The notes: generated from the letters alone by a model not told the origin. Positions 1-30,000 are shown, counted from the stretch's first letter. The stretch: DNA of 64,000 nt from Pocillopora damicornis (GCF_003704095.1 NW_020844115.1:186001-250000), one strand, 5' to 3'. Numbers and translations are program-made.

Positions 1-1
1 G

Positions 2-73
2 GGATTTATCTTCAAACGCCCTAAGCTCTCTTCCGGAAGGAGTATTCGCCAAGCTAACTAGGCTACAGAAGCT
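2..73 (+). CDS. LRR cassette exon (DLSSNALSSLPEGVFAKLTRLQK)
   Basis: 72 nt with a GTACGT donor; identical to the exon at 6502-6573. Confidence 0.9.
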
Positions 74-3000
74 GTACGTAAAATTTGATAAAACTTAGTA
101 CTTTCGACAAACAGTTTCTGTGCAGGTGTATTTTCCTTTTCTGTAAGCCAAAGGCAGAATTGTGATCTGAGTTGGACTCACGAGACGAGAAGAGGTGAAA
201 GAGAAGACAAGTGTTTATAGGCAAGGAAGGGGGAGGGAATGTTGGAAAGCCTGCTGCTGAGTCTAGAGAGTTTACCAAATGCCCCTAGATGAATAACTAT
301 TCTCTGCTCGTCACCTCTCACTTTAAATATAAAGGTGAGTAAATATTACCCTCCAACGGTAAAAAGTGAATCCCCAAAACAGATGTCAAAGGGACAAAGT
401 GTTGTCGCTGAAGAAATTCATTTCAATTACCGTAGCATCGTAAGCCCATTTAGATCGTGTTCAAAAGATCTGAGTTTTGGGTAATTTCTATGTACTACCT
501 TTCAAACGATGACAAGCTTGAATGCAATGCTGTTTTTATCTGTTTTTTTGTCACAAAGTACTCATTATTGTAAAGCTTTACTTTTCTTCTTGACTAAGCA
601 ATTTGATATTTCCATAGGGATTTATATTCAAACGCCCTAAGCTCTCTTCCGGAAGGACTATTCGCCAAGCTGACTCGGCTGTGGGAGCTGTACGTAAAAT
701 TTGACGGAGCCTAGTACTTCCAAAAAACAGTTTCTGTGTCAGCGTACACAGGCGTCTTTTCCTTCATTTTTAAGTAAAAGAGAAAAGTTTGAGCAAAGAT
801 GGACTCGCAACTACTAAAGGCGAAAGAGAACATTAGTATTCATAGCTAGGAAAGGGGGAGGAAAGGTTAGGAAAGTCCACTGCTTAGTCTAGGGAGTTTA
901 AGGATATGTTATAAAAGTTCATAATGAAGGAAAATGGAAACGAATCTTCAAGTGGACTGCTTCACGAGTGAAAATAGCCGACCTATGGGTTTTATGGCTC
1001 GTCGTTAGAACTTTCCGGTGGAATTGTTTTTAACAGTGGCTCTTAAAGACAAACGGCTAACTACCCTCATTGACTTCCGTCTTGCCCGGAAACAGAAGGA
1101 GTAATCTGTAAACTTTGCGTCAAACCTTTCTTTTCCTCCCCTTAATGTGCATTTTACTTCGGGGAACAATTTCTTAGTGACATTTTTTAGTTTTATTGGA
1201 TGACGATATAAGAATTGTACACATTTATAATCTTTTTCCTTATAAAACTGAGAATGGCTCTGTACCTAGTCTCTGATACATTTCCTCAATAAATTAAGTA
1301 CTTAAACGGTAAGTAGCTTGAATGTGCATTGCTGTTTATGTGTGTTTCTTATCATAAGATATTGTTGTAAAGCTTTCCATTTTCTCTTAGTTAAGTTATT
1401 TGATTATTTTCATAGGAATTTATCTTCAAACGCCCTAAGCTCTCTTCCGGAAGGAGTATTCGCCAAGCTAANNNNNNNNNNNNNNNNNNNNNNNNNNNNN
1501 NNNNNNNNNNNNNNNNNNNNNNNNNNNNNNNNNNNNNNNNNNNNNNNNNNNNNNNNNNNNNNNNNNNNNNNNNNNNNNNNNNNNNNNNNNNNNNNNNNNN
1601 NNNNNNNNNNNNNNNNNNNNNNNNNNNNNNNNNNNNNNNNNNNNNNNNNNNNNNNNNNNNNNNNNNNNNNNNNNNNNNNNNNNNNNNNNNNNNNNNNNNN
1701 NNNNNNNNNNNNNNNNNNNNNNNNNNNNNNNNNNNNNNNNNNNNNNNNNNNNNNNNNNNNNNNNNNNNNNNNNNNNNNNNNNNNNNNNNNNNNNNNNNNN
1801 NNNNNNNNNNNNNNNNNNNNNNNNNNNNNNNNNNNNNNNNNTTTTTGTCACAAAGTACTCATTATTGTAAAGCTTTACTTTTCTTCTTGACTAAGTAATT
1901 TGATATTTCAATCGAGATTTTTATTCAAACGCTCTAAGCTCCTTCCGGAAGGACTATTCGCCAAGCTGACTCGGCTGTGGCAGCTGTACGTAAAATCTGA
2001 TAAAGTCTAGTACTTCCAAAAAACAGTTTCTGTGTCAGCGTACGCAGGCGTCTTTTCCTTCATTTTTAAGTAAAAGAGAAAAGTTTGAGCAAAGATGGAC
2101 TCGCAACTACTAAAGGCGAAAGAGAACATTAGTATTCATAGCTAGGAAAGGGGGAGGAAAGGTTAGGAAAGTCCGTTGCTTAGTCTAGGGAGTTTACCAA
2201 ATACTCCTACATGCTTTAATCTCTCTCCGTTTGTCATTTGTTACTTCAAAATGAGAAATGAGAAATAACCAATACCTCTTTCCGGTACAAAGTGAATCCT
2301 TCAAAGAAATATCAACGGGACAAAGTGTTGCTCTGTAAAAGATGAATATCAATTGTCATAGTATAATAAACTTATCACGATGGCATCCAAATTTACAGTG
2401 TCAGAAAATCTGAGATTTGGATATTTACCATGTACTTTGATGCTTAGGATATGTTATAAAAGTTCATAATGAAGGAAAATGGAAACGAATCTTCAAGTGG
2501 ACTGCTTCACGAGTGAAAATAGCCGACCTATGGGTTTTACGGCTCGTTGTTAAAACTTTCCGGTGGAATTGTTTTTAACAGTGGCTCTTAAAGAAAAACG
2601 ATTAACTACCCACATTGACTCCCGTCTTGCACGGAAACAGAAGGAGTAATCTGTGAACTTTGCGTCAAACCTTTCTTTTCCTCCCCTTAATGTGCATTTT
2701 ACTTCGGGGAACAATTTCTTGGTAACATTTTTTAATTTATTGGATGAAGACATGAGAATTGTACACGTTTATAACCTGTTTCCTTATAAAACTGCGAAAA
2801 GCTCTGTACCTAGTCTCTGATACATTTTTATAATAAATTAATTACCTTTTAAAAGGTTATTAACTTGAATGCATTGTTGTTTTCTTCTGTTTCGGATTAC
2901 AAAATACTTAATATTGTAAAGCTTTACTTTTCCTCTAAGTTAAGTTATTTGATCTTTTTATAGGGATTTATCTTCAAACGCCCTAAGCTCTCTTCCGGAA

Positions 3001-6000
3001 AGAATATTCGCCAAGCTGATTGCGCTGTGGGAGCTGTACGTAAAATTTGATATAACTTAGTATTTCCAACAAACAGTTTCTGTGTTAGCGTATGCAGGCG
3101 TATTTTCCTTTCTCTATAAGCCGAAGGAAGAAGTGTGAACTGAGGTGGACTCACAAGACGTGAAAAGGTGAAATTTATAGGCAGGGAAAGGGGAGAGAGA
3201 TTAACAAATACCCCTACATGAATAATTACTCCTCGCTTGTTACCTCTCGCTAAAAACATAAATGGGAAATAAATACTACCCCTTACCGGTAAAAAGCTTT
3301 AATTTTACTCTTAGGCAAGTTATTTTTTATTTCTATAGGGATTTATCCTCCAACGCCCTAAGCTCTCTTCCGGAAGAAGTATTCGCCAAGCTGACCAAGC
3401 TGCGGTTTCTGTGCGTAAAATTTGATACAACTTAGTATTTCCAACAAACAGTTTCTGTACCAGCGTACACAATTTTTTTCCTTCTTTTTCTATAAACCGA
3501 AGGAAGAAGTTTGAACTGAGTTGGAATCACGGGACGAGAAAGAGAAGAAAAGTATATATAGCCAAGAAAGGGGAGGGAATGTTGGAAAGCCTGCTGCTGG
3601 GTCTAGAGAGTTTACCACACGCCCCTAAATGAATAATTACTCCCCTGCTCGTCACCTCTCGCTTGAAACATAAATGGGAAATAAATACTTCTTTGAACCA
3701 GTAAGATGCTGTGCTTTTCCTCTTAGCTAACTTATCTGTTATTTCTATAGGTACTTATCGTCAAACGCCCTAAGCTCTCTTCCGGAAGTAGTATTCGCCA
3801 AGCTGATTGGGCTGTGGAGGCTGTACGTAAAATTTGATAACTTAGTATTTCCGACAAACAGTTTCTGTGTCAGCGTATGCAGGTGCATTTCCTTTTTTCT
3901 ATAAGCCAACTGGAGAAGTGTGAACCGAGGTGGACTCACGAGGAGAAAAAAGGTGAAAGAGAAAAAAAGCATTAATGGGCAGGGAAATGGGGAGGGAATG
4001 TTGGAAAGCCTGCTGCTGTCTAGAGAGTTTACCAAATGCCCTTCAATGAATGATTACTCCCTGCTCGTCACCTCTCGCATAAAGTAGAAATGGGAAATAA
4101 ATACTACTCCGTACCGGTAAAAAGCTTTACTTTTCCTTTAAGCTAAGTTATTTGTTATTTTTATAGAAATATATCTTCAAACGCCCTAACCTCTCTTCCC
4201 GAAGGAGTATTTGCTAAGCACGCTGAGCTGCATTGGCTGTACGTAAAATTTGACATAACTTAGTATTTACAAGAAACAGTTTCTGTGTCAGGGTGCGTAG
4301 GCGTTTTTCCCTCATAATTAAGCCAAAGGAGAGAAGTGTGAGAAAAGGTGGACTCGCGACGACAAAAGGTGAAAGAGAACTTAAGTGTTCATGGCCAGGA
4401 AAAGGGTAGGGAAGGTGGAGAGCCTGCTGCTGAGTCTAGGGAGTTTACCAAACGCTTCTACATGCTTTAATCTGTCCTCGTTTGTCAATTATCACTTCAA
4501 ACAAGGAATGAGAAATAAATAATACCTCCTTCTGGTACAAAGTTAATCCCTTAGTGAGAAATCAACGGGACAAAGTATTGCTGCCTAAAGATTAATTTCA
4601 ATTGTCATAGCATAATAAACTTATTACGATCGCATCCGAAATCAGATAATCTGGGACTAGGGTATTTACCATGTAGTTCTATGCGAAAGATATTTTATCA
4701 AGGTACAGAATAAAGATAAAAGGAAACTAATCCCTAAATTGACCACTTGGTGGATGAACATATCTGATCTATGGGTTTCAAGGCTCGCTGTGAAGATTGT
4801 CCGTTCGAATTACCTCGGCTTCATTTAAATCCCTGTCCTATGTTGATACCAATACTATTCTATACTGATATGGTAGCAAATATTCAGAAAAAAACATGAC
4901 AAAGTCTTTTGGACAAGTTTTAAAGTTTTCCGAGAGTGAATTGACTGCTGATCAATTTGTTTATAATAGTGGCTCTTAATAGACAAACGATAAAACTACC
5001 CACAATGCCTCCGCCTTGGAAGGAAACAGACGGAGAAATCTGTGGAATTTCGACAAACCTTTCTTTTCCTTCCCTTCATGTCTATTTACTTCGGGATACA
5101 ATTTCTTTGTGACAAGATATAATAGTTCTACACATTTAATTACCTGTTTTTATACAAAACTGTAAAATACATAGTTTTTGATACATTTCTTTTAGACATT
5201 GAGTACCTTTCAAACAATAACAAGCTCGAATGCAATACTGTCTTTGTCTGTTGTTTATAAAAAAATACACATTATTGTGACCTGTTGACTAAATAATTTG
5301 TTATTTCCATAGGGATTTATCTTCAAACGCCCTAAGGTCTCTTCCGGAAGGAGTATTCGCCAAGCTGAGTGGGCTGTCCTGGCTGTACGTAAAATTTGAC
5401 AGAGCCTAGTATTTCCAAAAAACAGTTTCTGTGTTAGCGTATGCAGGCGTCTTTTCCTTCATTTTTAAGTAAAGAGAAAAGTGTGAGCAAAGGTGGACTC
5501 GCGACGAACAAAGGCGAAAGGGTACATAAGTATTCATAACCAGGAAAAGGGGGAGGAAAGGTTAGGAAAGCCTGCTGCTGAGTTTAGGGGTTTACCAAAC
5601 GTTCCTACATGCTTCAATCTCTCCCCGTTCATCATTTTTCACTTCTAATGAAAAATGAGAAAAAACTAATACCTCCTCCCGCTACAAAGTGAATCCTTCA
5701 AAGATATAGCAAGTGTTGCTGCCTAAAAGATTAATTTCAATTGTTGTAGCATAATAAACTTATCACGGTCGCGTCCGAAATCACGGTGTGAGACAATCTG
5801 ATATTAGGGTATTTACCATGTAATTTGATGCGAAAGATATGTTATCAAGGTACAGAATAAAGATAAAAGGAAACAAATTCCTAAATGGACCGCTTTTCCC
5901 ATGAAAACAGGTGATCTATGGGTTTTAAGGCTCGCTGTGAAGGCTGTTTGGTGAAATTACCTCAGCGTCATAGAAACCCCTGTCCTATATTGATACCAAT

Positions 6001-9000
6001 ACTATTCTTAGCTGAGATGGTGGCAAATCTTGAGAAAAAAACCTAACAAAGTCTGAGTTGGACAAGTTTTAAATTTTTTCATGGAGTGAATTGATATCTG
6101 ACCGATTTGCCTATAACAGTGGCTCTGATTGACAAACGATTTATTACCCACGATACTTCCCGCCTTGGACGGAAACAGACGAGGAAATCTGTGGACTTTA
6201 CACCAAACCATTCTTTTACTTCCCTCCACGTCATTTTACCTAATGAAACAATTTCTGTTACCATGTTTAAGTTCACTGGAACTAGATATAATGTTTGGAC
6301 ATATTCAATTATCCGTTTTCTTATAAGGCTGTGTAAAGCTCTGTAACTAGTCTCTGTTACATTTAGTTAAAACGCTAAGTACCTCTCAAACGGTAACAAG
6401 CTTGAATGCATTGCAGTTTATGTCTGTTTCTCATCACAAAATACTCATTATTGTAAAGCTTTCCATTTTCTCTTAGTAAAGTTATTTGATTCTTTTCATA
6501 GGGATTTATCTTCAAACGCCCTAAGCTCTCTTCCGGAAGGAGTATTCGCCAAGCTAACTAGGCTACAGAAGCTGTACGTAAAATTTGATATAACTTAGTA
6601 CTTTCGACAAACAGTTTCTGTGCAGGTGTATTTTCCTTTTCTGTAAGCCAAAGGCAGAATTGTGATCTGAGTTGGACTCACGAGACGAGAAAAGGTGAAA
6701 AAGAAGACAAGTGTTTATAGGCAAGGAAGGGGGAGGGAATGTTGGAAAGCCTGCTGCTGAGTCTAGAGAGTTAACCAAATGCCCCTAAATACTATCATAT
6801 CTCCCCGTTCGTCACCTTCCTCTTAAAATTAGAAATGAGAGATAACTACTTCCCTCTTCGATAAAAGGTGAATTCCTCAAATAGATGTCAACGGGACAAA
6901 GTGTTGCCGCCTAAGAAATTATTTTCATTTATCAAAGCATTGTAAACCTATTTAGATCGTGGCTGAAGTATGATTGATCAGAAAATAGGAGATTTGGGTA
7001 ATATAATCTTTATGTACTTTGATGCGAAAGATATACTATCAAAGTCCAGAACAAATGAAAAGGAAACAAATCCCTAAATTGACCACTTGGCGGATGAAAA
7101 TAACTAATGTATGGGTTCAAGGCTCGCTGTGAAGAATGTCCGGTGGAATTACGTCAATCATTTAAATCCCTGTCGCATTTCGAAACCAATACTTTTTTAA
7201 GCTGAGATGGTAGTAAATCTTCAGACAAGTTTTAAAGTTTTCCGAGAGTGAATTGACAGCTGATCAATTTGTTTATAATAGTGGCTCTTACAGACAAACG
7301 ATAAAACTTCCCACAATGCCTCCGCCTTGGAAGGAAACAGACGGAGAAATTAGTGGACTTTTCGACAAACCTTTCTTTTCCTTCCATTCATGTCATTTTA
7401 CTCCGGGATAAAATTTCTTTGTGACATCTTTTAAGTTCCACTGGAATATAATAGTTCTACACATTGAATTATCCGTTTTTGTACAAAACTGTGAAGTACT
7501 TAGTTTCTGATGCATTTTTTTAGACATAGAGTACCTTTCAAACAATAACAAGCTCGGATGCATTACTGTCTTTGTCTGTTGCTTAAGAAATAGTGCCCAT
7601 TATTTTAAAGCTTTACTTTTCCCGTTTACTAAGTTATTGAATATTTCTATAGGTATTTATTTTCAAACGACCTGAGCTCCCTTCCGGAAGGAGTATTCGT
7701 CAAGCTGACTGGGCTACAGGATCTGTACGTAAAATTTGATACAGCCTAGGATTTCCTAGCCTAAGAAATCATTTCAAATATTAAAGGATTGCAAACCTAT
7801 TAAAATCGTGCCTGAAGTAAAATTGACCAGAAAATGGGAGATTTCGGTAATCTTTATGTACTTTGATGCGAAAGATATACTATTAAAGTCCAGAATAAAG
7901 GAAAAAATTAAAGAATCTCTAAATGGACCAATAAGCGTGTGAAAAAAGGCCGATCCACAGGTTTAGACGCTCGGTGTGTAAACTTTCCGTGGTGGATTAC
8001 CTCAACGTCGAAGAAGCCCTGTCCTCTGTCGATACAAATAGATTTCTAAGCTGAGATGGTAGCAAATCTTCAGAACTAAACGTAAGAAACCGTGTATTAA
8101 ACAAGGTTATAAAATTTTTCGAGAACGAATTGACATCTGATCCATTTGTTTATAACAGTGGCTCCTATAGACAAACGACAAAATTACTCACAATGCCTCC
8201 GCCTTGTGCGGAAACAGAAGGAGTAATCTGTGGACTTGGCGCCAAACCTTTCTTTTCCTTCCTTTTGTTCATTTTGCCTGGTGAAAAAAATTTATTTTAC
8301 CATCTTTAACTTCATTGGAACTAGATATAATCTTTGTACTTGTAAGGCTGTGCAAAGCTCTGTACCTAGTCTCTGTTAAGCTAGAATGCATTGCTGTTTT
8401 TGTCTGTTTCGTATCATAACATATTCATTATTGTAAGGCTCTACTTTTCCTCTCGGTTAAGTCATTTGATTTTTTCATAGGGATTTATCTTTAAACGCCT
8501 TAGACTCTCTTCCAGGAGGAGTATTTTCCAAGCTGACTCAACTGGGGAGCCTGTATGTAAAATCTGACATACCAAAGCTTATTCTGCAAAACATTTTTTT
8601 TTGTCTCAGCGTACACATTAATGTTTTTTTCTTCCTTGAGCCTAAAGGAAGACGTACGAGCTGAGTCGGAACTATCCTTAATACTTTTGCTTCCTCGGAG
8701 GGTCACCTTTTTACGCCAACACCCATTGAAATCCTTGAATTGTTAAAGATTGAAGTCCTTCGTTGGTCAGAGCATGTCAGAATTAACTCCACGGCATGTA
8801 TCTTCAATGGAGTTATACGCGCTTCCGCTTGCGTTTGAGAAGTCAATCAGCACATAAACCGTGTGGCCGATAGTCGATTGACGTCTTATTTAAAAATTAT
8901 TATCTCAACAAAATATCTCGAAAATCAAAATTTGGGCAGACGGTTTTTATCTTTAACTGCTGATCTTACTCTTTGTCAATTTTCAAGGGAATCGGTTTAA

Positions 9001-12000
9001 TTCTGTGAGCCCCGAATTCAAAAAAATGTTTGGGCAATTGATTCGAAAATAAGAGCAGAGAAAAATGCATCCAAAGTTTCTTAAGACGATTTCTTTACTT
9101 TACTCCGAATTTAATCCTTAAGTGGTGAATTTCGATCCTTAAGCTTAAATATTTAAGAGCGTGTCCACGAGAAAACATGGAAGGGGGCAATAGAAACATG
9201 GCATGGGCCAATAATGCTCAAATCACCGATATGGCTCAAACTTGACGCAATGCTGAGTAGTATGAGTTAACAAACGCGTGAAAATGATGGGTCAAAATTT
9301 TTATTTACCCCGGAGATATGGGGTTCCCTTAGGCAAACCCCAATTTCTTGCTTTTTTCAATGATTAGATCACTGAGGGTGTCTAGCTGCTGTTTCTCATT
9401 AAGGGCTCAATTTGCGTGATTCAAACATTCTCTCTTCTTCAGGAGATATATGTTTTTCACCAACCGAGAGGTCCGTATTGCAAAAAATTGTGCCCGAAAT
9501 GTTGGGCACCAGTATTTAAGACGTGATGATTTAGGGTTTTAATTTCGGTAAGATCCTCAATAAACGGAACAATTTTTGAACGAATAGATGGTAGAAGAAA
9601 CGAAGGTAAAGTAAATTAAAAAGAGATGCTTCACAGAAACATTTTCATCGACACTGATAATGGTGATTTAAAAGTCTCCTTAGCAAACTTTTTTATGAAA
9701 CATTTTTTAATAAGAATCTATCAAGACCTGACACCTGTCAATTAAATAGCGCTTGAGAAAAAAGGCCCACGTACACTTTAAAAAAAACAACAGCACTGGT
9801 TTGGCAAGCAAACTCGAGTTCAATGTCTATCACGATGAATTTTTTTCCTAACTGACCTTACATACAGTATATTCTTGTCCAACGACGATTAATCTACGAA
9901 AAATGACCTCTTGTCAGTTTTAAATATCAAGGAAAGTCAAATTGTAAATAAATTCAAATGGATTTTGTGGAGTTTTGAGAGTCTGCTTGTTTGTTTCCTG
10001 CAATGGCGTGTAAATCTTGTCTTTCTGCTGTGAAATGTGTGGTCGAAATATTACATTTCATGAGACAAAAATTTATTAGTATAGGTAATGAAATGATTTC
10101 GAGTGCAATTTGGAATAAATAGGCAAGCGTAAATTTTTTTCAAAGACTAACAAAATTTCACGAGCCCGTTGGGCGAGTACATTTTGTTTTCTATGAAAAA
10201 AATTAACAAGTGCTTATTTATTCCGAACTGCACGAGAAAAATCATGTGATAACGTGCTAATATTATACATGAAAAAATACAAGATAGCTTATCACAATCA
10301 TGCAGAAACAAAGCGCGCGCATCAAGTGCAAAAATAATTTTTTCAAACCTGCAAGAGACTTTGTGCGTTCGGTCAAAACAATCGCGTACGATCAAAACAA
10401 TAATATAAAATGATATTTTCACATCTTTAAGGCGCAAAAAAGTTCAAAGTGCGGCTAACAGTTCAAGGAATTATTCAGTCTGTGTCCGAATCACTTTCGA
10501 TGAAATGGAATCGTCGTTTGCGAAGTTTAACCATGTTTGTTTTTAATTTTGGCGTACAATCGCGTGAGTAAAGTGTTAAGTCGGTTCGTCTTTTGGAGAT
10601 ACTGATCCTCTATTAACACATAATGACGATGATGACTAGAACGAAGGAGATACAACAACACCTTTTCAACCTGAATATAATTCACCTCCTAGTCCTTCAA
10701 ATAAAGGTACTGAAATGACGACAATGAACAGAGGGGAAGAGTGAGGAGCAAAAACTGCTAAAACTCCTTTGATCAATGAAAGTGAATCACTTGATAACAT
10801 TGCACTCAAGACTTAAGTGCTCGTGAAAAACTTGATATGGAATATTCAGACAGGAAACCTACTATGCTTCCAAGTTGGAAAGGAAAGAGTTTATGCAGCT
10901 TCCAATGCTTTTGGTAAGAGAGCTCCCAGTAAATATGTCACCACCAAGATATGATTCTGAAGTTGCTGATGGTCCAACATTAGTAATATAAGTGAAAACA
11001 GATCCGAGACCGTGATTGTTTCCCTCTGTGAAGTGGAAATCTGTGCTTGGTGAAATTCCAAATTCTGCACGCGACCTTTTGAAAGATGGCGTGTCACAGT
11101 TATAATTTATTTGGTTGAACGTTGAGTCGTCAGGAAGAGCTGATTTACCCTGATTTCCTTCCATCTAAAAGGAATCCTTCTGAAGATGAGGTAGATGTGA
11201 AACATCAGAAGTGACTTGATCTGTTCTGGAAGAACATATAAATATCGAGTACAGAAAAAAACTTGGATCACTGCTTACACTCGGAAAGAGTTAAGAGTTG
11301 AATTCGACAAAAGACCGAATGGGTTTTGTTTGATAGTATCAAAGGTTGAATCCTTAAGATATGCGAATGTCTTCAGAATGTTTTTGACAAAAATGAAAAG
11401 AAAATTCTGTGAAAGTCTCACGATTGTGAATGATAATTTGAAAGTTTTACAGTTGTGAACGATATGGTGAAATTTCCACAATTTTGATCAATTTTGTGTA
11501 ATCAAACGATTGGCTTGTTGATTCGCAGGTGATTGAATATTTCGTTGTGGTGAGTTTGTATACCTGGAAAAAAACACCTACTAACTTATATTTATTCAAG
11601 GCTCAAAAATACAAAGAGGTTTTCAAATTATTTTAACAAAATTTTGAAGATTAACATTTTTCTCTATGAATTTTATTTGATGTAAGTCGCAACGTCATGT
11701 TTCAGTAAAGATGCAAAAGAAGCTTAAGTCAAGAATAAGCTTCTCCTTATCGACGGCTTCAATTTCATAACTTCCTTATTCCATACACTGGTCTCAAACT
11801 TGAGTCATTTTCTGAAAAACCAAAGTGATTTGAGAGAAGGAGAAGAGAGAATTAATAATTTATCTATTGGCTTGAGGTAGTGAACGAAATCTTTGTTAGT
11901 TCATTCTGCCCAGCCGGCAAAACAAGTAGTATACTTTTTTAATATTTGCAACGAAGCGAAGGATGTTCTAGGCGACTTAACACGCAAAGGACAGGATACC

Positions 12001-15000
12001 GCACGCTATGAGCGGGCCAGATGGGAGTATACCTCCCGCTCTCGGGATCAATCAGGTAACAGAATTTTTAGAATACCACCCGCTCACGTATCGAGAAAAA
12101 ATAATAAAGTGTGCTCTTCAAATAGGGGTTACTGGATTTTGATAAAATAGACCAAAAGCGGTTGTTTGGATGTAAATTTCACGTCAGCACGGAGTATGAA
12201 ATAAGTTGCTCAAGAATGTTATTACAGTTCTTGGAAGTCGAGTAATTTCTTTCAGGAATTATGCTCAGAAGTGGTTGGTCATCGTGGCCATTAGGCCTTA
12301 CAATACCCTTAATTTGGACTTTGTCCAAACCAGAAAAAATGAACAAGTGGATCCTTTCTGCGAATCTCCCATGGGAACACAAGCTGCAGAGGTCGCTCAG
12401 TGGTGTGTCCGTTGTGCGGACAGTACTACACCCTTTACAATTCTTTCCTCGCCTTGAAGGAGGCGCAGCAGTGTCCCTTTCCTCCATTCTCCACGGTTCT
12501 TTCCGTCACTGACAATAAGAACAAGCCTCCCTTACTGTAGGTGTGGCTCCCACCTTCTAGTTTAGACGTTGCTTTCCATTAGGCCATGGATATACTCTCT
12601 CTTCCATCGCTTCCATGCTTTAGCAGTTTCTGATCTCTGCTTCATCTTCGTCATCTTCGTCATCTTCTCTTGATCGTTCTCAATGTCTTCTTATGGATAG
12701 GCATCTCGCCCCCATATGATTACATTCGGCGTAAGAACCTCTTCGTCTCCCCCATCTCAACGTGTGTCTGGGGACAATTATTTAGATTTCACTCACTCTC
12801 AATGGGAAATGATTTAAAGGCTTTGTAGGAAAGGTGGGACATTCCATGGGTCTTGTGAAGGGCCCTTTAACCTCCCCGCCGAGGGGATCTCGCCTGATTG
12901 AATTTGCAACAAACTTCGAGACTTGCCAGATAGTTCTACCACTTCTCGATTTTCTGTATAGTTTTGATCCAACCTGATGTAGTCTTGAAAACTGCAGCAT
13001 TGTCTGAGATAATGACGAGGCGCTTCGTTCTACGCGAGATGAAAGCTTTAAGCTTCCTCTGGAACTTGTCTGCTTTCTGAGACTGTTCTCTGGCAGGTCA
13101 CTTGTTGGTGGCGTTCCATACGGTCTTGTGGAGAATACTTTTAAACATAGTGCATCTCTTGATCGTCTTCTTGACTTTTGCTCTCAACCTCGTAATCCAC
13201 CAGCTCTCCGTTACACTTTCTGTGGTACTAGAAATGCATTATCTAATTATGTACATGGCCAATTAGCTTGCCAGCAAAAAGTCCCCCTGGAAGGTACGTT
13301 GGCTTGTACTTCTTGTTTCTCCCTTCACACTTGATGATGTCTGTCTGTTAATCTTCTACTAATTTCCACCCTCGAGATTGCAAACTCGCTTGGTCTGCAT
13401 TCTGGACTCGCCTCACCCATCAGTTTTGTACCGCAGCTATTTCATCGGTTACCAATGGACCTGAGCTCCTCTTCAGCTTGTTTCTCCTCAAGTTACTGAT
13501 TACCATCGACGTCCAGGCTGTCATCTTCATGGTTCTCCAGGAAGCGCCCCTCTCCAAAAATGCATCCCATTATCTGGCTTTCGCTCTTGTATGTGAGGGT
13601 TCTCCTCTAGGATAGATTTGCACTCTTTAAGGCCGCTCTGGTGCCTTTTAACTCAGGTTTATTTAACCACTTTGTTCCATTCAACAACCAATCAGTGCTG
13701 GTGAACCAGTCCTCTCTCTCCATTTATTCAGTTTTTTCTCCTCTGATTGCAAAGTCAGTCAGATTCATGTCTGTTGGAAAGCACTTTCAGTTAACTTAGA
13801 GCTCACCAGTTGTTGCCTCGATCTTCTTCCCTCTGTTGACCACAAACACCTTCCAACGCTTTGCACTATTGCTCATCCGATATAAGGCAACCATGCTGTC
13901 CATAGTGAAGACTTGATGTGCCAACGCAGCAGTGCACCACGCTGGTTCTTTGCCATATTCGCTGCCATATGACCGCTGACAAGTTCCGGTCTTGGCATAG
14001 AAGTATTCTTTCAAGATATTCGTGACTTCGAAGACAGAAGACACTTAACTACAGCCTTTTCAACAAAGAGAAAAAGGCTTTCACTTGCAGGTTGTTTACA
14101 AGGAGTGTGAATTTTTTTCAGTTGGGTTGTACTATGTCGTAAAATTTAGGTTGTTCACTTGAAAATGTTATTTAATCTGGGAAAGCACGGTTAATAGTGA
14201 CAAGTAAACACGCAATTTAATCTTCTGTTGCACAGTACTTCAAGGACGTAAACGGAATTTTTCCCTATCGAAATCAAATGTATCGGTTTTCCCACTTTTC
14301 GGGGCGCCGCAGCTCGCCAAAGTGAAAGTGAATTCTAGAAACGTTTGCTGCTTGACCGCAATCATGGCTCCTAGGTCTGCAGATATCAATTCAGTCGAAG
14401 AATTTATAGAGGATTATGCAACGAAAACACAAAAAAGAAAATTCTACAAAATGTTGCTTCGCTTAATGTACATGGCAAGACTCAAAGAAGAAATTCCCAA
14501 AAAAATTTCAAAGCAGAGCCAATCATTTCGTAGTATCTGAACAACAGCAGAATTTCCCTTATTTTGAGTGGACTGACGACAGGGAGCTAAAAAAATACAA
14601 TACCTTTCGAGTTGCAGAATGCTGGACTGAAATTCATTCACCTCGCTCAAAGGCAGATAATCAACACAGCTGTCGTTTTTTGAGGGCGCACTCATCGAGG
14701 GGCAGCTAAGCTCATTAACTAACAACCTGAGTCAAGCCTCGACGCTGCAAATCCAGCGAACTAAAGAGGAATCTTTCCTAAAACGCTAAAAAAGACTTAA
14801 ATCTAACTCTTATTGGGAAGCATCTTGATCGTATTTGCGATTTGTGATACGTACGCGTTCAAAAAAATTGTTATTAAAAAATAAAGCTGATAATTAACTT
14901 TAGCTTCTTCTGAACTTTCAGCGGCTTCCAAAATGGAAATTTCCAGTGCGTGCCATTTTTGTATCATTCTAAAAGAATAATTGTTTAACGTAAGTTTGAA

Positions 15001-18000
15001 TAAAACTTTAGTGTTGATTCAGTTTGTTTGAAATAACGGCGTCCATCATGTATCTTGATGTGGTGTGTTGATTTCGCTAAACGATATTCATGATCAAATT
15101 TTTGCATTTTGTTTTATAATAAATTTCGGATGTAACTAGTGTTCTCATTGTTGAAAGAGCGTTTTTTATCAGAGTACAAAACACGGAGCTAAAGCTGTCA
15201 CGCCATCTTCCAATTTGTACAATTTCCGACCATTGCCCGGATTCCTCTCTGTTTTTTTTTTCGTTAATTGAACCACAAGTCTGACATGACTTGTAAAAGC
15301 AATATGAGAGCAAGCTCTTGGCCTCAACGGATACAGAAAAACCTGTAGGTAACAGAACAAATTTCATGGAGATAGGAAGTGAAATTTTGGAACAAGCTGA
15401 CCAGCAATTAGCAAGAGAAGATAGGTTTTAAACATGCGAAATTACAACGTGAGCAGAGACAATAATCACCAAAATGGATAAAATGGACTGTCCGAGTTTT
15501 GAAGGAAGTAATGCAAGATAATTAAACGGATTCTTTATAAAAAAAAAACAAATGAAGAAGTCTTGACTGTGCTCTGTTCTGTTGTAAGACTTTTAAAGCA
15601 AAAAGGAGGCAGCTAGAGCACTCAAAAAGTTGGGAGAAAAACTGTATTGCGTCTCGTGTTTTCCCCTACACTTCTTTCGTGCTCTAGCTGCTTCCTGTGT
15701 ACTTTACAACAAAACAGAGCACATATAGAAAAAAAAATTACTTCATGCTAAGTTTGCTTGTACCACATTATTCACTCGTTGCAAAGAAGAAAACACACTC
15801 GCTCGTTCCTCCCTCGTTCGTTTTTTCTTCACAAATCGTGGGTATAAATCATCGACGCGAACTAACCATTAAGTAATTTATAAATGGCTAAGCCCCACCG
15901 ACGCCAGCAAATTTAGTTTTCATTTCAGAGCCATAATTCGTACCGCGTTTAAGTATTCGGAAAGAACTTTATGCTTTTTTATTTATTTCTTTTTTTTTTT
16001 GTTTTTTTTCTTTCATTTCAATAATTCTTGCTTAAAGAGTCTCTCTCCATTCATTTTATCACAGTTCTCAGCTATGTCAAAGTAATAGGTCTTTTTAGCT
16101 ATGTGGTCACGTGGTTTGAAACGAGTAAGCAAAAGAATGCAAAATGACTGTTAGGTATATAACGCAGGTGACACCTTATGGACGAAATTCCTTCCTCTCT
16201 TTTTAATAAAAAATTCATATTCACAGAAAGATCAGCAGCACTCAAAAGACTGCGGTTATATAGAAATCGGCGATAACCGAAATGGAATCATTAACTAAGA
16301 TCATAAACAACCTCGAGTTGGATAAACAAACTTGTGAGCACATGATCTTTAAAGATCGCAAAAATACACGAAACGGGCACAAAAGGGAAGCAATTGTATC
16401 ACACCAAGAAATTTTTGACGATTTTGTGATTTCAAGTCAGAATGAAGTTATATTTTGTCGAAAACTATACAGTTTTTTTGTTTTGCGCTAATTAGTTCGC
16501 TCTTGATCGGCAGCCGGTCAAGATTCTCAAACGACTGAATAATCGGCAATCGGATATTTTTTTGAAAATTTAACAAATTTATAGAAGCTACACCATCCAA
16601 AGAATTACATGTTAATGAAGAACCGATAAGCAATCTCGAAGTAATTTTATCTCATGTCTTCAATCTCGAGCCCAGGGTCATTTTGGCTCCTTGTCAGCGG
16701 TATTGTCGCCAAATAATGTCCTCTGGGATAATCAAATTTTTATCCCAGAAATCGCAGGATTCCGGTTTTAACTGCGCATGTCTACACTGTTCAGTTTTTG
16801 CTTCCGGTTGACTTCTGTGCGTGCTCAAAATAGAGCACACGGTCCGCTACGCCAGCGGAAGAAGAAAAGAACGTAAATTACCTTTGTGCACGTGAACTAA
16901 CATTAACAGCTGAAAACTGTTTGAAACACTATTTCATTTTGAAATAGCTTTTTACGGACCATAAAAACATGAATAGGTGCCATCCGCTTTCAATCTCCGA
17001 GTTCGTTTTTCTGCAAACTTGAAATCCTCGTCTTCGAAATGTTCAGACCACACTTTGCTACCAAATATTACACTTAGGTCTTTATTTGATCTTATTTCAT
17101 TCTAAAAGTCGATATCTGTTTTAAAATACATTAAAAAACCATAACGACATTCAAAAATCAAGATTAGACGAAATTTTGTTTTTAACCATTTACTAATGCT
17201 ATTTACTGTGTTTCTATTGTTCCGGTCAGACTCCTTCATGGAAACAACCTACAACTTATTCCTTATCGAGCCTTCTTTGCCATGGATGCCTTGAGGATAA
17301 TGTAGGTACACTCTAATACACACACTTTTCGAATGATTTATTGTAAGAGACTGGTGCAATCGACTTTGTGTAATTTTTTTTTATTCCTTCGATTTTATGC
17401 CTTGACGCTTCTTTAGACGAAGCACATAGACAGGATCTGAGAATACAAGCTACATTCAATTGTAAATAGCCGGCCGTTGTGGCTCACTCACCTCTGATAA
17501 TTGCACACAACTTACCACTTTGGCCAATTCCCAATATTTTTCACACTATTTTTATTAATTGGCGCATGAACAACTTAATCAACCGGTTTTTGTTTGAATA
17601 TTTTGAAAATGTTCTATCAGGTAAGAGTGCCGTAATTTGAAGTGCACGATGATATAGCTACTATGACGGGAATGATACGACAAACACGACGATATCAACG
17701 TTGGTGAATACGAATTAACTATGCTAATAGTGAGGATGATTATTATAATGCGGATAACATTGATGATAACTTCGATGACGACGAAGATAATGATGCTGAC
17801 GATGATACTGATAACGACGATGACGACAATGATGACGTCAATAACGATGACATTTTATCTTTCTATCTTTTACTTACAGAACACTAACTGATAACCCAAT
17901 AGAGACAATTGAGTCGGAGGCATTCAAGTTTTATGGACCTAGTATCACAAATTTGTAAGGGATCTTATCTATTTACTCACCGAGTAAAACCTTGACACCT

Positions 18001-24000: not shown

Positions 24001-27000
24001 CGAAGACAATGGAAGCCTAAATGAATCACGTGGAAACTAGCTGCTCCTACGTTGTCACACGAACACATCAAATAATAATAATAATAATAATAAGTTCTTA
24101 TATAGCGCATTAAAATTGAACTCTATGCGCTTAAAAAAGATTATCAAAGATTAAGAAATCCACCTCCACAAATCACATTAACTAATACGTGACTTTGGCA
24201 AATTTTACAACATTCGTTGATCACATAAAGAATCTTTGATTGTTGGGTGGGGCATTTGAACACAATCTTGGCCCGAGGGATGGGAATTTGAACGAGCCAA
24301 TCTCCTAAATGTCAAATGCCCTATGAATTGCCCGGGAGGGGGATTTTGAAGCTTCGAATTTATCGACGCATTACCTTGCATTCCCTCAGCCGTCCCTTAC
24401 CTTACAACTTATTTCGTTTTTTACCAGGCGGTTTCTACGTTGATTCGCGTGGCTACGTTGCAGAAAGCTGTAAAAAATGTCCAAACGGATCTTATGTCTC
24501 ATTCGACAAAAAACCTGGAAAATCAATTCTAGACTGCAAGGCGTGCCCAATAGGTAAGTAATTAACACGACCACATGATGTGTTTAATCTCAATACTTAC
24601 TGTTTACTAAAATTTGTATGCAAAGAGTCGTTTCAAAAGTAGCGCTTGAAAAAATTTAAAAAACCTATGAAGCGGCTGAAGACTACTTTGAGAAAACAAA
24701 TATCATTTTGGGTATGATATCCATATACACCGCGCTTTTGCGCATAGATTTTGGGTTGTTACGGAAGGGGGAACTCCGGGTGCCTCCTTATAACTTCAAC
24801 CTTCGTAACGTTACGGTCACCAAATTCGCCTACAGTGGAGGAACGAATGAATAAATTGTATTTATCCTCATAAATGATTTCAATTTACAGTTAGTTTTAA
24901 AACTAGCTGTGTATTTAATTCACCTTATTTTCATCACACTAAACAAAAGGTAACTACTTAGCAAGTACCGAAACCTATTTTTTACCCTTGCCGGGGAACT
25001 TGCTTTAAATCAGAATAGCAATATAAAAATTTTCCGCGTTAAGCGTACCATGGTAGAGTTTCTCATTGAACATTTTTCTTTTTTATGATGTCAGCTGCCA
25101 AACTGGATCTCGAATTTTGAATAACTGAATGTGTTTCCTGTGCATTAAGTCTACGGTAACACATCTTTTCAGTGTAATGAATGCGTCTATGAGGAATTTT
25201 GTAAAAGGGAAAATAATTTGCCCGAAATAAACATCAGCGATAAGCGGAAATAGTAGTCATTTGAATAAAAATCTTCAAATCTTGCATCATACCCAGACGA
25301 AACCTAAAAGAAGGGTATGAAGGGGAAAATTCAAAATATTGGCAAAAATCCCTTCGCAATTTCGGTTATCAGGGAACGATATCATTATCGTGCATGCCTC
25401 AACAGCTTAATATGTCCACGAAAAGATTTTGAAAGGAGTCCTTAAGTTTCGATATCAAAGCCTAAATTTTAAGTCTTGAGTATGCCTCGTATTCCCCCTG
25501 TTGAGAAAAGAATAGATTTAAAACTTGCCGAACGTGCAGAGGGCAAGAGAGGAAATGAGAAGCCTTTACTATTCATTCTCTTTTCAAGTTTAGAGAAGGA
25601 GGAGACATTCTTCGTGTGAAAACAAAATCATTTTGCAGGGAATCAAGCGCCCATATAACACTTTTTTTCAGGAAGAAATTTGAATCAGAAATATAATCTC
25701 AACAACACTGACAGTTTTCTCAATTTTAACAGGAACGGAAAGTGACTTTGTTGCTGGATATCGAGCATGTCCATGTTTGGAAGGATTTTACCGAACCCAT
25801 CGATTCGCTAAATGTCTAAGATGCAAAGTAGGACTGATATGCCAAGATGACTATGCCTCATTGAAATCTGGATATTGGTGGCGGTGGCGTAACGATTCAT
25901 ACAAACATCGCTACCAGGATTTCATACAAAATCTTTTGGCGACTTCTCCAGTACTGGACAATTCTTCCATACAATACCCTTATTCGATGCCGACACCTTA
26001 CAGGTGCCAGGTAGAGAAATCTTGCAAAGGTGGCTTGGATTCACCATGTGCAAAAGGTTACGAAGGTCCAATTTGTGCCGTTTGTAGCTCAGGATATCAT
26101 AAGCAACTGGAGTTCTGCGAAAAATGTCCCTCGAAGGTTTGGATTGTGGCACAGCTTTCAATTGTTCTCGTCATTCTATCCCTACTATTCGCAATTTTGA
26201 TGCGGAAGAGAAAAACAAAGTTGGTAAAGGACGAAGGTCACTATCTGATAGACATGTTTTTTTCCAAGCTCAAAATACTAATTGGCTTTTATCAGGTCAC
26301 GCATGGCTTACTAGATGTGTTCTCGTACATCGAATGGCCAGATTCTCTGCAAGCTGTCCCCACGTACTCTGGAATACTTCAGTTGAATTTCTTTCAGATC
26401 GCACCTGTCCACTGTCTATTTTTAGGGTTGCACGTGAATGCCTTTGGAGAATTGCTCCTGATATTAACTTTGAATTTGAGTGTCATTGGCGCCTCTGGTG
26501 TATGTTACCTTATATATAAGACGGTAATCTTGAAGAGTCATAACCTTGAAGAAGACGAAAAGTCCAGGAAAATCAATCAAACAAAACAGTTGGTTTACAG
26601 AAATCTGTTTTTCTTCTTGTATGTAACGTATCTGAGTACATTTTCCAAAACAGCCAGCGTTCTATCTTTTGCTTGCCGCAAACTCTGCAGAGATGAAAAG
26701 GATGAGATGTGTGAGGAATACGCTAAAGCAGATTACAGCATAAAATGCCAAGGATCCTTATATAACCATTGGCTGATCCTGGCATACATTTCGACCGCAT
26801 ACGTCTTTGCCCTGCCTGCCGCTTCAGTTATCGTACTTTGGAGGCAACGGAGAATGTTATTTTCTTCGACAGACAGTAATAAAGACACTGGCACAGGGGT
26901 CGTTGGAGGTTTGAGATTCCTCTTTGAAAACTATAAACCCACTTTCTGGTACTGGGAACTGGTGGAGATGTCTCGCAAAGCTGTTCTAACATCTGGTCTT

Positions 27001-30000
27001 ATTCTTGTGGGAGAAGAGACCAGGTCTTACATCGGTTTGGCATGGGTCGTTGCCGGTATGTATGGAGTACTTTTCTCTTGGAATAAACCCATAAAAGTCG
27101 CTTCGGAAAACAGGTTGATGTCGACGTCCCTTGCTGTTACTATTTTGAACTTGGGTATTGGCGCCGTGAGCAGAATCCCCGCAGAGAATATATCAGATGA
27201 AGTGGATAAACACAAAGACGAAATGGCGATGAAAATACTCATACTGGCCGCAAATACTTTGGTAATTGGCCTGCTTGTCGGTAAGAATGGCTAAGACGAA
27301 CAACATATTTGTGACAATACATGTGCAAACGTTAGTTAATTCTTTTCCGTGAAACACGTGACAAAATAACAGAATACTGACCGACGATTAAGGTGATGCA
27401 TATCGTTGTAACATTTTATGCTCTAAACCGCATTTTTAACTCGTGAATTGCGCGCATGCGCAAGAGCGAGTTGTAGGTACGATGTGGGAAATAGCACTCG
27501 CTCGCTCGCTCGCTCGATTGGTCGATTCCTGTAAACTTTTTTGCGATTTTAGGCTTTTGAGTGCATTTGATAGTTTTTGGCGAGCAATAAACAAACGAAA
27601 TGGCGACCTCTGTTGCTAAGAATAGTGGTGGGGTGAAAAAGAAGCCAATGATAATTTTAAAAGAGTCTTTTTTTTTCGTTTTAGTTTCAACAAGCGGCGC
27701 CAGCGACTGGCAGGCATGCAAGGAGTCACACTGAAATAACAGAACAACCTTCGTTTTTCATAAAATTGTAATTTACAATCCTTAAACTTGAAAACAATCC
27801 GAAGATTCATTGAAAATATCTCTTACTGCGAAGCGCTCGGAGTTTACAGATATTCAAAAGCCTTTTCTGTTATGGCGTGAGATTGAGGACAAAATCGATC
27901 ATTACGTTTCGTATCGTGTGTTTTTCTGTGTGAAGCAACAAAAGATGCCGGCGACTGACGAAATTGCAAGTTAACACGAAAATCAAATAACACCTAAACA
28001 AACAATTTTAGCTACCGATTTTCAGTGAATTTTTAAAAAACAATTTTCTTTTAAGTTTCAAGACAATTTGAAGATTCAAAATACATATTACGTACTAAAA
28101 TGCGAAAGTTATACACAACAAAATTGATAAATAGGCCTGAAATGAAATTCTATCTTGTTGTTGATTATACGTTGCCTAGCACGTGACTAAATCTACCCAG
28201 GCGGAGATCCAAAATGACGGTGGCAGCCTTGGCTTAGATATCTCACTCAAAACTCGTTCCCGTTTGTCTCACTTGATAAAGAGGGAATCGTTAATTTTTT
28301 CATTAAGACAGTATTGCCTTGATTTTCTAATATTTACAATGATAGACAGTAAATTTTACTTTTCACCCACATTTACTTCCAACCTTTTCTTTTGAACCAG
28401 AAACAAAAATGATATACGTTTAAAACACATTACATCATCCACCCTTGTCAAATGTAATAGCATGATCATTTCAATTGTAATGCCTTCTTATCCCAACGTT
28501 ACTTTGTTTCTTTGCTACATTAGCGAACACTGAACTACTGCTCGTACTCTAGATATGACAATCAACCACAAAATTCCCTAAACCAGATAACATTAAACAT
28601 AATCCAAAAAATCGTGTGTCAATTCACGAGTTTGCTCACAGAGCACTTTGATTTCCCCTGCCATTGAGACAGCTTTACCAAAACACAACAACCAATCAAA
28701 TTTGTTTAAAGAAATTAATCAAATTGCAGGAAAACGAGAGACAAATTTTGCATTTGTTTTGAGACCAGCTCAATATACCGAATCAATGTAACATTTGTAC
28801 AGACTAACACAAGTTGTATTGAGCGAAACCGAAGCCCCTGAATAAAATTCTCCAGGAGTTTTATAGAAAAGTTCGTAGGAAAGACGGGGAAGATTACGAG
28901 CGTGATAGATTTCGTGTAATGGTTACGGCTGTCGACTGATGCCTAACAGAGAAAGAATACAAACGCTAAACTACTCTTTAGAGAGGTTTTAAAAGTTTGA
29001 AGAAAGTTCTTGAGGGAAAAGCCCAAAAACTCCGGCAACAAGGCAGAGGCAGGCTGCCGAACTGGTGAGCCATGACATGAAATAAAAAAAAATAAATAGG
29101 AAAAAATAGTTATATTTTTGCTTGTATATCAATAACTAATAATCATATGATTTTCTCGTGCAATTTAAGATAAATCAGCACTTGCAAATCTTTCAAAGAC
29201 TACAAATTGCAAAATTTACACAATTAAAAATTTTACTAACCTTTGAAAAATTTACTCGTGCTGATTCATCCCAAACTGCACGAGAAATATCTTATGACCA
29301 CTTATACAGATTGTACGCCACTCACTTCAGGTACCATAATTAATGCTCTGAACACCTGCGTGAGAGCATTTCAAGCCGGGTTGGGAATGAATGGATTAGG
29401 AAGCGTGTCTGATGCTAAAAACATCCGAATATAAACGATACACTCAAACGAGTGAAGCGACAAAAATTGATGTTTTCATACCGGAGGAGATATTAAGAGA
29501 AGCCTCATTCGTTCGTGGATACAGATTTGAGTGTAATTTTTGGTATCCTTTGCCTGACGACTTCGACGGAAGTAGCCTTTCGGGTTATGGACAAACATTG
29601 AAGCCACGCTGAGTTTTGTATAAAAGATGGTCGCATTTATCGTTTTTAAATACAATGCTATCACAAGTCTGTTCTTATTTTTTCTTTTTTGTTACTGATA
29701 TGAGGTCTTTAGAGAAGCAAGAGAATCGACCGTTTGCCTTACCGCACATAAAAAAACGGAAATAATTGTTTGGCGCGTTTTGCTCGCTTAAGTTCAGACC
29801 TATTTGTACTTATCAATCAAGAAATGAGGTAACCAATGTTCTTAATCTTGAGAGCGCTTCTGGTAATCCCTAACTCTTAGCCAGCATTACGTCGCCGGCT
29901 TTTTCTCTAGGGTATCCTTAACAGCAAGGGGACCCACTTCCCAAGCCAAGGTTTAAAACATGATTTAAAGTGATTACTCACGTGACATTGCTCAGCAGCT

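Follow-up and report, generated by a model that had tools for sequence, protein, structure and literature searches.

Fast-changing codons at predicted binding-strand positions in a leucine-rich repeat exon array of the coral Pocillopora damicornis

Positions 2-8552 of a 64,000-nt stretch of the Pocillopora damicornis genome (GCF_003704095.1, NW_020844115.1:186001-250000, or C750:186001-250000 in the genome searched here; the whole stretch is hereafter called the window) hold 12 copies of a 72-nt cassette that encodes a leucine-rich repeat (LRR). The last two full codons of the cassette, which specify residues x2 and x3 of the LxxLxLxxN motif, have changed faster than the neighboring introns, a pattern well known where selection favors new binding specificities. 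We think it moderately probable that selection favoring diversity at x2 and x3 caused this excess and, from the arrangement of the sequence, we hold with good confidence that the array is the 5' ectodomain-coding part of a receptor gene whose remaining exons lie downstream.

On the reading that we favor, the array would have grown by tandem duplication of exon-plus-intron units and would have been partly homogenized by gene conversion. Purifying selection keeps the LRR scaffold in place, and x2 and x3, at the start of each beta-strand, have diversified faster than the neighboring intron, as, probably, has the residue two positions before this pair. The most likely cause would be that selection favors, or maintains, ligand-contact residues that differ between repeats.

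Anatomy of the cassette array

An intact cassette is a 72-nt phase-1 exon preceded by a polypyrimidine tract and an AG acceptor and followed by a GT donor, which reads GTACGT in most cassettes, GTGCGT in one and GTATGT in another (cassette 12). The exon ends in CT, and the first base of the next exon completes a split Leu codon (phase 1-1). Read from base 2, every intact cassette gives 23 codons of the form x-L-x-x-N-x-L-x-x-L-P-x-x-x-F-x-x-L-x-x-L-x-x-(L), and one exon corresponds to one 24-residue LRR repeat. With all exons 72 nt long and in phase 1-1, any subset of cassettes keeps the reading frame. A check of AG and GT sites and of stop codons finds 11 intact exons.

All cassettes lie on the plus strand. 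Given with their x2x3 dipeptides, they are cassette 1 at 2-73 (QK; its acceptor AG straddles the window start), cassette 2 at 618-689 (WE), cassette 3 at 1416-1471 (the first 56 nt read, with the variable 3' codons inside an assembly gap), cassette 4 at 1915-1985 (WQ; damaged), cassette 5 at 2964-3035 (WE), cassette 6 at 3339-3410 (RF), cassette 7 at 3751-3822 (WR), cassette 8 at 4167-4238 (HW; the most diverged of the core set), cassette 9 at 5313-5384 (SW), cassette 10 at 6502-6573 (QK; its exon identical to that of cassette 1), cassette 11 at 7653-7724 (QD) and cassette 12 at 8481-8552 (GS), the last of the array. Cassette 3 aside, these dipeptides are exactly those that an earlier note on this sequence had read before the split Leu, and the further variable sites named there (D/N/Y, S/Y/F and TR/IA/TK/IG/AE/SG/TG/TQ) are present as listed. 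At L017:9070-9141, 930 nt before the start of the window, there is a 13th cassette, which is more diverged.

In cassette 4 the acceptor AG has become CG and the exon has a 1-nt deletion. An AG 2 nt downstream, together with the deletion, would remove exactly 3 nt and leave a possible 69-nt in-frame exon, in which the first eight residues are scrambled and the Asn motif is lost. The assembly gap at 1472-1841 has nt 56 of cassette 3 at its left edge and, at its right edge, an intron homologous to the one preceding cassette 2; because these edges fall in an exon and in an intron, the last 16 nt of cassette 3, variable codons included, are unread. The remainder of that cassette and intron should lie here; the cassette 1-to-2 unit, taken as a model, would predict a length of about 488 nt. 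Each exon is in phase by itself, and the other cassettes are therefore unaffected by the gap.

The repeat carries the LxxLxLxxNxL core, with LP...F in the variable segment, of the 24-residue "typical" LRR class. It matches the LRRTM consensus structure 5a5c repeat by repeat (E=2.6e-36, over seven or more stretches), and it also matches VLRB 2o6s (E=1.3e-20), designed LRRs and repebodies. Against the Pfam model LRR_8, a single 23-aa cassette, being short, reaches 13-14 bits (cutoff 27; E=0.04-0.08), and full-length homologs reach 42-293 bits.

In canonical numbering, codons 22-23 correspond to x2 and x3 of LxxLxLxxN and the split Leu to L4; the next exon opens with four codons for x5, L6, x7 and x8, and the xxLxLxx strand is therefore divided between two exons. 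The D/N/Y site is x5 and the S/Y/F site is x7; the TR-type pair occupies codons 19-20, outside the xxLxLxx motif. The proposal that the variable codons fall on x positions of LxxLxLxxN is borne out for the two most variable ones, which are x2 and x3 of the strand motif. This mapping rests on motif identity with solved proteins, among which xxLxLxx forms the concave binding strand of variable lymphocyte receptors (VLRs; PMC5395774) and is the solvent-exposed motif of plant R proteins (PMC3113787).

When the P. damicornis genome (234 Mb, 4393 contigs) was scanned with the scaffold at up to 3 mismatches, we recovered this array, one exon at C750:106227, and nothing else. Metagenome contigs searched for exact copies of the 24-nt scaffold gave no match.

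The long introns (at 900-1250, 2450-2800, 4700-5150, 5850-6300, 7020-7450 and 7870-8300) share a repeated insert of several hundred nt, which is absent from the short 416-nt units at 3194-4452 and may be an intronic repeat or a mobile element.

Substitution rates at x2 and x3 relative to the introns

The flanking introns can be aligned across cassettes and differ pairwise by 0.22-0.26 on average, versus 0.16 for the exons. The adjacent intron had been described in the earlier note as conserved. The flanks do align, but with a mean pairwise difference of 0.24 they are far from invariant, and strong conservation is confined to the ~20 nt before the exon. A maximum-likelihood tree built from introns only has a length of 1.15 substitutions/site and groups cassettes as (1,10), (2,4,9), (6,7,8) and 5. 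Mapped onto this tree by Fitch parsimony, codons 22-23 require 2.83 steps/site versus 0.89 for intron (P=2e-5), the xxLxLxx set defined a priori 1.60 (P=0.006), codons 19-20 1.83 (P=0.02), and the scaffold 0.33.

Site-wise codon likelihoods, in which the intron tree sets the synonymous rate and the intron HKY matrix is used, give omega values of 5.5 at x2 (p=0.001) and 8.4 at x3 (p=3e-5), both still significant after Bonferroni correction for 23 sites. The a priori xxLxLxx class as a whole has an omega of 2.1 (p=0.007). The scaffold codons are under purifying selection, with an omega of 0.19 (p=4e-8). Nonsynonymous change thus outpaces the neutral rate at x2, at x3 and over the xxLxLxx class, and does not do so at x5, x7 or x8 taken singly. 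Codon 20, the second of the TR-type pair, has an omega of 3.5 that is nominally significant (p=0.026) for a codon picked after the data had been seen; as it is the only codon of the pair to reach even nominal significance, the suggestion that this pair too is a diversifying site stands as borderline for one codon.

Because recombination can mislead a tree, we also used tests that need none. The minimum number of mutations (states minus one) is 1.67 per site at codons 22-23 versus 0.69 (P=0.004), and the mean pairwise difference there is 0.565 versus 0.238 for intron (P=0.001); in these tests codons 1, 3 and 4 behave the same as intron. Among three phylogenetically independent close pairs of cassettes (2-9, 1-5 and 6-7), 11 of 18 nt differ at codons 22-23, compared with 392 of 2629 in whole introns (P=9e-6). 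Codons 19-20 differ at 9 of 18 nt in the same pairs (P=5e-4 against introns), and the rest of the exon at 12 of 180 (P=5e-4 in the lower tail against introns). Nei-Gojobori pairwise dN/dS by codon class is 0.75 at concave codons, a value that is uninformative here because saturated multi-step codons inflate the synonymous proportion (pS); we relied on the intron-baseline tests instead.

The earlier note had proposed diversifying selection at the variable sites, and had named as contrary outcomes a dN/dS at or below 1 and a divergence no higher than that of flanking intron. Measured against the intron baseline, neither outcome is seen at x2 or x3, which exceed that baseline in every test used; x5 and x7 are compatible with neutrality or constraint, and for these sites the proposal is not supported.

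Scaffold conservation and gene conversion

When the synonymous rate of the scaffold is freed, it falls to 0.31 times the intron rate over all scaffold codons (p=0.001) and to 0.11 times over the eight codons AAC GCC CTA AGC TCT CTT CCG GAA (p=0.001), in keeping with the observation, already made from the raw sequence, that the scaffold is nearly invariant even at synonymous sites. One visible cause of this low rate is gene conversion. A tract of ~350 nt at 6452-6752, on the plus strand, matches the cassette-1 region (window 1-252 plus L017:9950-10000) with 4 mismatches over a span of -50 to +250 around cassettes 1 and 10, and the intron on both sides of it is 22-30% diverged. The tract looks like a recent gene conversion between units 6.5 kb apart. 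A second near-identical block, distinct from this tract and located further upstream, is shared by cassettes 1 and 5.

Sub-patches of the variable region cross the groups of the intron tree as well; examples are CTA-CAG, common to cassettes 1, 10 and 11, and CTG-TGG, common to 2, 4, 5 and 7. Given these shared sub-patches and the conversion, the array evolves in concert, and the tree-based omegas are therefore upper estimates. Between pairs, codons 19-23 change in an all-or-none manner (5-8 of 12 nt, or none), a pattern more easily reconciled with patch replacement or strong episodic selection than with point mutation at a steady pace. The convex residues A16 and K17 are near-invariant in this array and highly variable in the paralog arrays described below. 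Because, on either of these histories, the conversion that homogenized these convex positions spared x2 and x3, we suggest that selection has kept x2 and x3 different. Because its introns are still alignable, the array allows exon duplication, gene conversion and selection to be separated.

Proposed selection and its alternatives

Several results weigh against diversity-favoring selection at x2 and x3, or against the setting in which we place it. The rate tests draw on 8-10 paralogous 23-codon exons of one assembly. Conversion and shared sub-patches mean that some sites have a history other than that of the intron tree, which inflates the tree-based omegas, and single-step codon models overrate bursts across codons 19-23. 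The codon likelihood gives omegas of 0.8, 0.5 and 0 at x5, x7 and x8, no faster than intron. The x2 codon is CAG, TGG or CGG in 7 of 10 distinct cassettes, and these are interconvertible by CpG transitions; part of the x2 signal is made up of changes from CGG to TGG or CAG, for which CpG decay would be sufficient. In an older paralogous array (C790), two recent cassette pairs have 0/6 and 1/6 changes at codons 22-23 versus intron differences of 0.145 and 0.216, which shows that the x2/x3 excess is specific to the present array or episodic. Finally, we did not find where the gene begins, and a 100-nt gap lies at L017:7963-8062, just upstream of the first cassette. No splice joints emerged when three RNA contig runs and a raw-read run were compared with positions 2900-8899.

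The alternative that survives best is that the exposed x positions drift under relaxed constraint, the excess arising from CpG decay, from multi-nucleotide events and from an intron baseline lowered by conversion or by the alignment of conserved intron parts only. The neutral behavior of x5, x7 and x8, the single CpG transitions that separate CGG from TGG and CAG at x2, and the lack of an excess in the recent C790 pairs all agree with such drift, as do the presence of the conversion tract and the fact that distal intron is often unalignable. Against it, x3 has no CpG route and gives the strongest signal, with its omega of 8.4 and 6 of 9 nt different in the independent pairs, and the tree-free tests still return P=0.001-0.004. 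The true neutral rate would have to exceed the measured intron rate more than 2.4-fold, and exonic synonymous sites are slower than intron, not faster. We regard relaxed constraint as an unlikely explanation that nonetheless deserves appreciable weight. A fixed mutational hotspot at the x2/x3 codons was considered separately and rejected, the recent C790 pairs being unchanged there.

Another possibility is that the cassettes are decaying or silent relics outside any expressed gene, whose variability reflects drift. Cassette 4 is damaged, no spliced reads were found in the RNA runs, 8.7 kb without recognizable exons separate cassette 12 from the next exon, and a gap and an unrelated minus-strand open reading frame (ORF) sit just upstream of the first cassette. 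Drift, however, would spread changes evenly, whereas at 60 of the 72 exon positions the rate is below half that of intron; the scaffold omega of 0.19 (p=4e-8) and the 11 cassettes with open frames and both splice sites point the same way. Because the scaffold is under purifying selection and the splice sites are intact, the cassettes seem to have been coding for most of their history, and we consider a silent array improbable.

The RNA contigs cross exon-intron borders unspliced at a depth of 2-6, and the raw-read run gave no reads there. At 3181-3915, contigs from an RNA-labeled coral run span exons 6 and 7 together with their introns, again unspliced. Two RNA-run contigs of uncertain origin have 7 exon changes relative to the window (6 nonsynonymous) versus 13 in 553 intron nt, a comparison that is anecdotal; some of these exon changes fall on scaffold residues.

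The uniform length and phase of the exons would also permit a combinatorial repertoire, in which alternative splicing of the Dscam type or somatic rearrangement of the VLR type gives different receptors per cell. NCBI isoforms of homologs from Montipora and Apostichopus do differ by one LRR unit; single-exon skipping in predicted isoforms, however, is ordinary alternative splicing. The RNA data contain no joints of any kind, and the cassettes, unlike VLR donor cassettes, have ordinary splice sites and lie in one orientation within one gene. We give combinatorial use little credence, and the same slight probability attaches to its specific form, a cnidarian counterpart of Dscam in which cassettes with different x2/x3 residues are used by regulated exon inclusion or skipping. 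Were it true, one coral gene would yield many receptor variants, with germline conversion and selection supplying the cassette diversity.

An assembly artefact, in which alleles or collapsed repeats were stitched in tandem into false cassettes or mosaics, is very improbable: the assembly is short-read and scaffolded with a gap inside the array, and the pattern of cassettes 1 and 2 recurs in cassettes 3 and 4, but six runs of unlisted library type from three studies carry 63-75% of sampled words of 1842-9500, misassembly cannot create distinct dipeptides, and most cassettes have distinct introns.

The downstream gene and its paralogs

After cassette 12 come 8.7 kb without a recognizable exon, and then, all on the plus strand, a series of exons that we take to belong to the same gene. 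The first, at 17230-17301, is a further 72-nt phase-1 LRR exon, of NNLQ type, which begins with A, so that CT|A would encode Leu. A Cys-rich exon at 24424-24555, collinear with homologs, has a sub-threshold Ephrin_rec_like or TNFR-like match. A large exon at 25732-27294 has a sub-threshold DUF7630 match and a multi-pass membrane domain with ~6-7 hydrophobic segments, and a C-terminal exon at 30492-30701 is matched by coral homologs. In the window, DUF7630 scores 19.6 bits (cutoff 27) and Ephrin_rec_like 14-17 bits (cutoff 23); among full-length homologs, DUF7630 passes its cutoff in 5 of 7, and Ephrin_rec_like does so only in P0008 (24.8 bits), the rest being sub-threshold.

Two paralogs in the same genome have the same order of array, NNLQ-type exon, Cys-rich exons and membrane ORF. 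In the first, C790:110363-135244, the array runs from ~110363 to 126469, the NNLQ-type exon is at 126729 and the ORF at 133736; in the second, on the minus strand at C750:117371-131540, the array runs from 131469 to 124970, the NNLQ-type exon is at 124385 and the ORF at 118882-117371. In both, the NNLQ-type exon directly follows the array, and from 17225 onward the window is collinear with C790 exon by exon. We link the array to the downstream receptor exons because the two lie on the same strand, because their phases match (CT| and then A), and because both paralogs place an NNLQ-type exon after an array. The array would thus be spliced to these exons, and the gene very probably belongs to an uncharacterized animal family in which an LRR array is followed by Cys-rich Ephrin_rec_like repeats, then DUF7630 and finally a multi-pass membrane domain.

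The paralog cassettes are older and vary also at convex positions 16-17. In the C790 array, x2 and x3 are among the most variable positions (entropy 3.17 and 2.32 bits), and aromatics make up 22-24% of xxLxLxx positions versus 1-2% elsewhere. The introns of the C750 minus-strand array are not alignable, and that array provides no replication of the rate test.

The 505-aa membrane ORF has 43 matches in the P. damicornis genome, where its paralogs are 75% identical. Most of these matches are open-framed and some contain stops, as in a large, partly decaying family. A library of 1.84 billion proteins contains 3527 relatives of the ORF at E<=0.001, of which the best is 59% identical, and by tblastn the ORF is 42-60% identical to family members. 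Long relatives in the library have LRR_8 (up to 12 stretches), Ephrin_rec_like and DUF7630 before the membrane domain, sometimes with CUB, MAM or SRCR. Relatives in Oculina, Montipora, Porites and the sea cucumber Apostichopus are labeled "uncharacterized protein" (for example XP_068730350 from Montipora and XP_071852171 from Apostichopus). A literature search found no paper with "DUF7630" and none describing an LRR/Ephrin_rec_like/DUF7630 receptor family in corals. Homolog isoforms from Montipora (P0008/P0154) and Apostichopus (P0159/P0100/P0160) show clean deletions of 23, 24 or 25 residues in the LRR region, which suggest the skipping of one LRR exon.

Comparison with known LRR systems

Judged by its sequence, the array gene appears to be an LRR receptor with selected binding-strand residues, of a kind known from plant R genes, VLRs and Ectocarpus ROCO genes and found here in a coral. 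It resembles the full-length members of the LRR/Ephrin_rec_like/DUF7630/multi-pass membrane family, which have N-terminal LRRs and with which its downstream exons are collinear, although some members add CUB, MAM or SRCR domains that are not found in this gene.

The closest precedent for the exon array is in Ectocarpus, where the LRR exons of LRR-ROCO genes have undergone duplication and shuffling and the sites under positive selection lie on the concave face (Zambounis et al., 2012; PMC3341825). The LRR-ROCO and LRR-kinase arrays of this brown alga share with the coral array repetitive LRR exons subject to duplication and shuffling, and in both cases site models pick out positively selected residues at concave-face positions, which in the coral are predicted ones. 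The algal arrays encode cytosolic ROCO GTPases or kinases, whereas the coral protein would have Cys-rich repeats and a multi-pass membrane domain. The evidence differs too: it comes from a genome-wide codeml analysis in Ectocarpus and, here, from 8-10 cassettes of one gene set against an intron baseline.

In plant R proteins (Cf-9, NLR), a classic case of diversifying selection on the solvent-exposed residues of this motif, Ka/Ks >1 is confined to the x residues of xxLxLxx (PMC3113787). Sequence exchange among tandem paralogs is common to the plant genes and the coral array. The plant comparisons are between genes or alleles with many LRRs per exon, whereas ours are between exons of one gene, in which only x2 and x3 stand out.

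Concave-face hypervariability underlies antigen binding by VLRs. The VLRs of lampreys and hagfish have the same 24-residue repeat type and variable xxLxLxx strand residues, with aromatics enriched there. VLR genes, however, are incomplete in the germline and are built up somatically from non-exonic donor cassettes on their flanks, whereas the coral cassettes are ordinary germline exons with splice sites. We considered VLR-like donor cassettes and rejected them: the cassettes are same-strand exons with AG/GT sites and are collinear with the paralogs. Simple motif scans for the LRRNT and LRRCT caps found no Cys-cap motif on the plus strand at 8553-17229 and no LRRNT-like ORF upstream, nor was a stalk found.

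Corals distinguish symbionts, pathogens and neighbors without antibodies, and most of their receptor repertoire is uncharacterized. The family to which the array gene appears to belong, with at least 40 loci in the P. damicornis genome and thousands of database relatives, all "uncharacterized", joins a VLR-like LRR ectodomain to an unusual multi-pass membrane domain. Recent, site-specific diversification on a strand that is predicted to bind ligand marks the gene as a candidate recognition receptor. The x2 and x3 residues are those to mutate or to compare between populations.

Neighboring sequence features

The array gene may have an interrupted 5' end, or may lack one. An unrelated 150-aa minus-strand ORF lies a short way upstream of the first cassette, at L017:8336-8788; by eye it has a GIY-YIG-like motif, which would suggest a retroelement fragment. 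Pfam gave no match to this ORF, nor to two ORFs in the region downstream of the array. Past the receptor gene, at 31914-32671, the window contains a tandem repeat with a period of 48/96/144 nt, in ~15 copies of ~70% identity.

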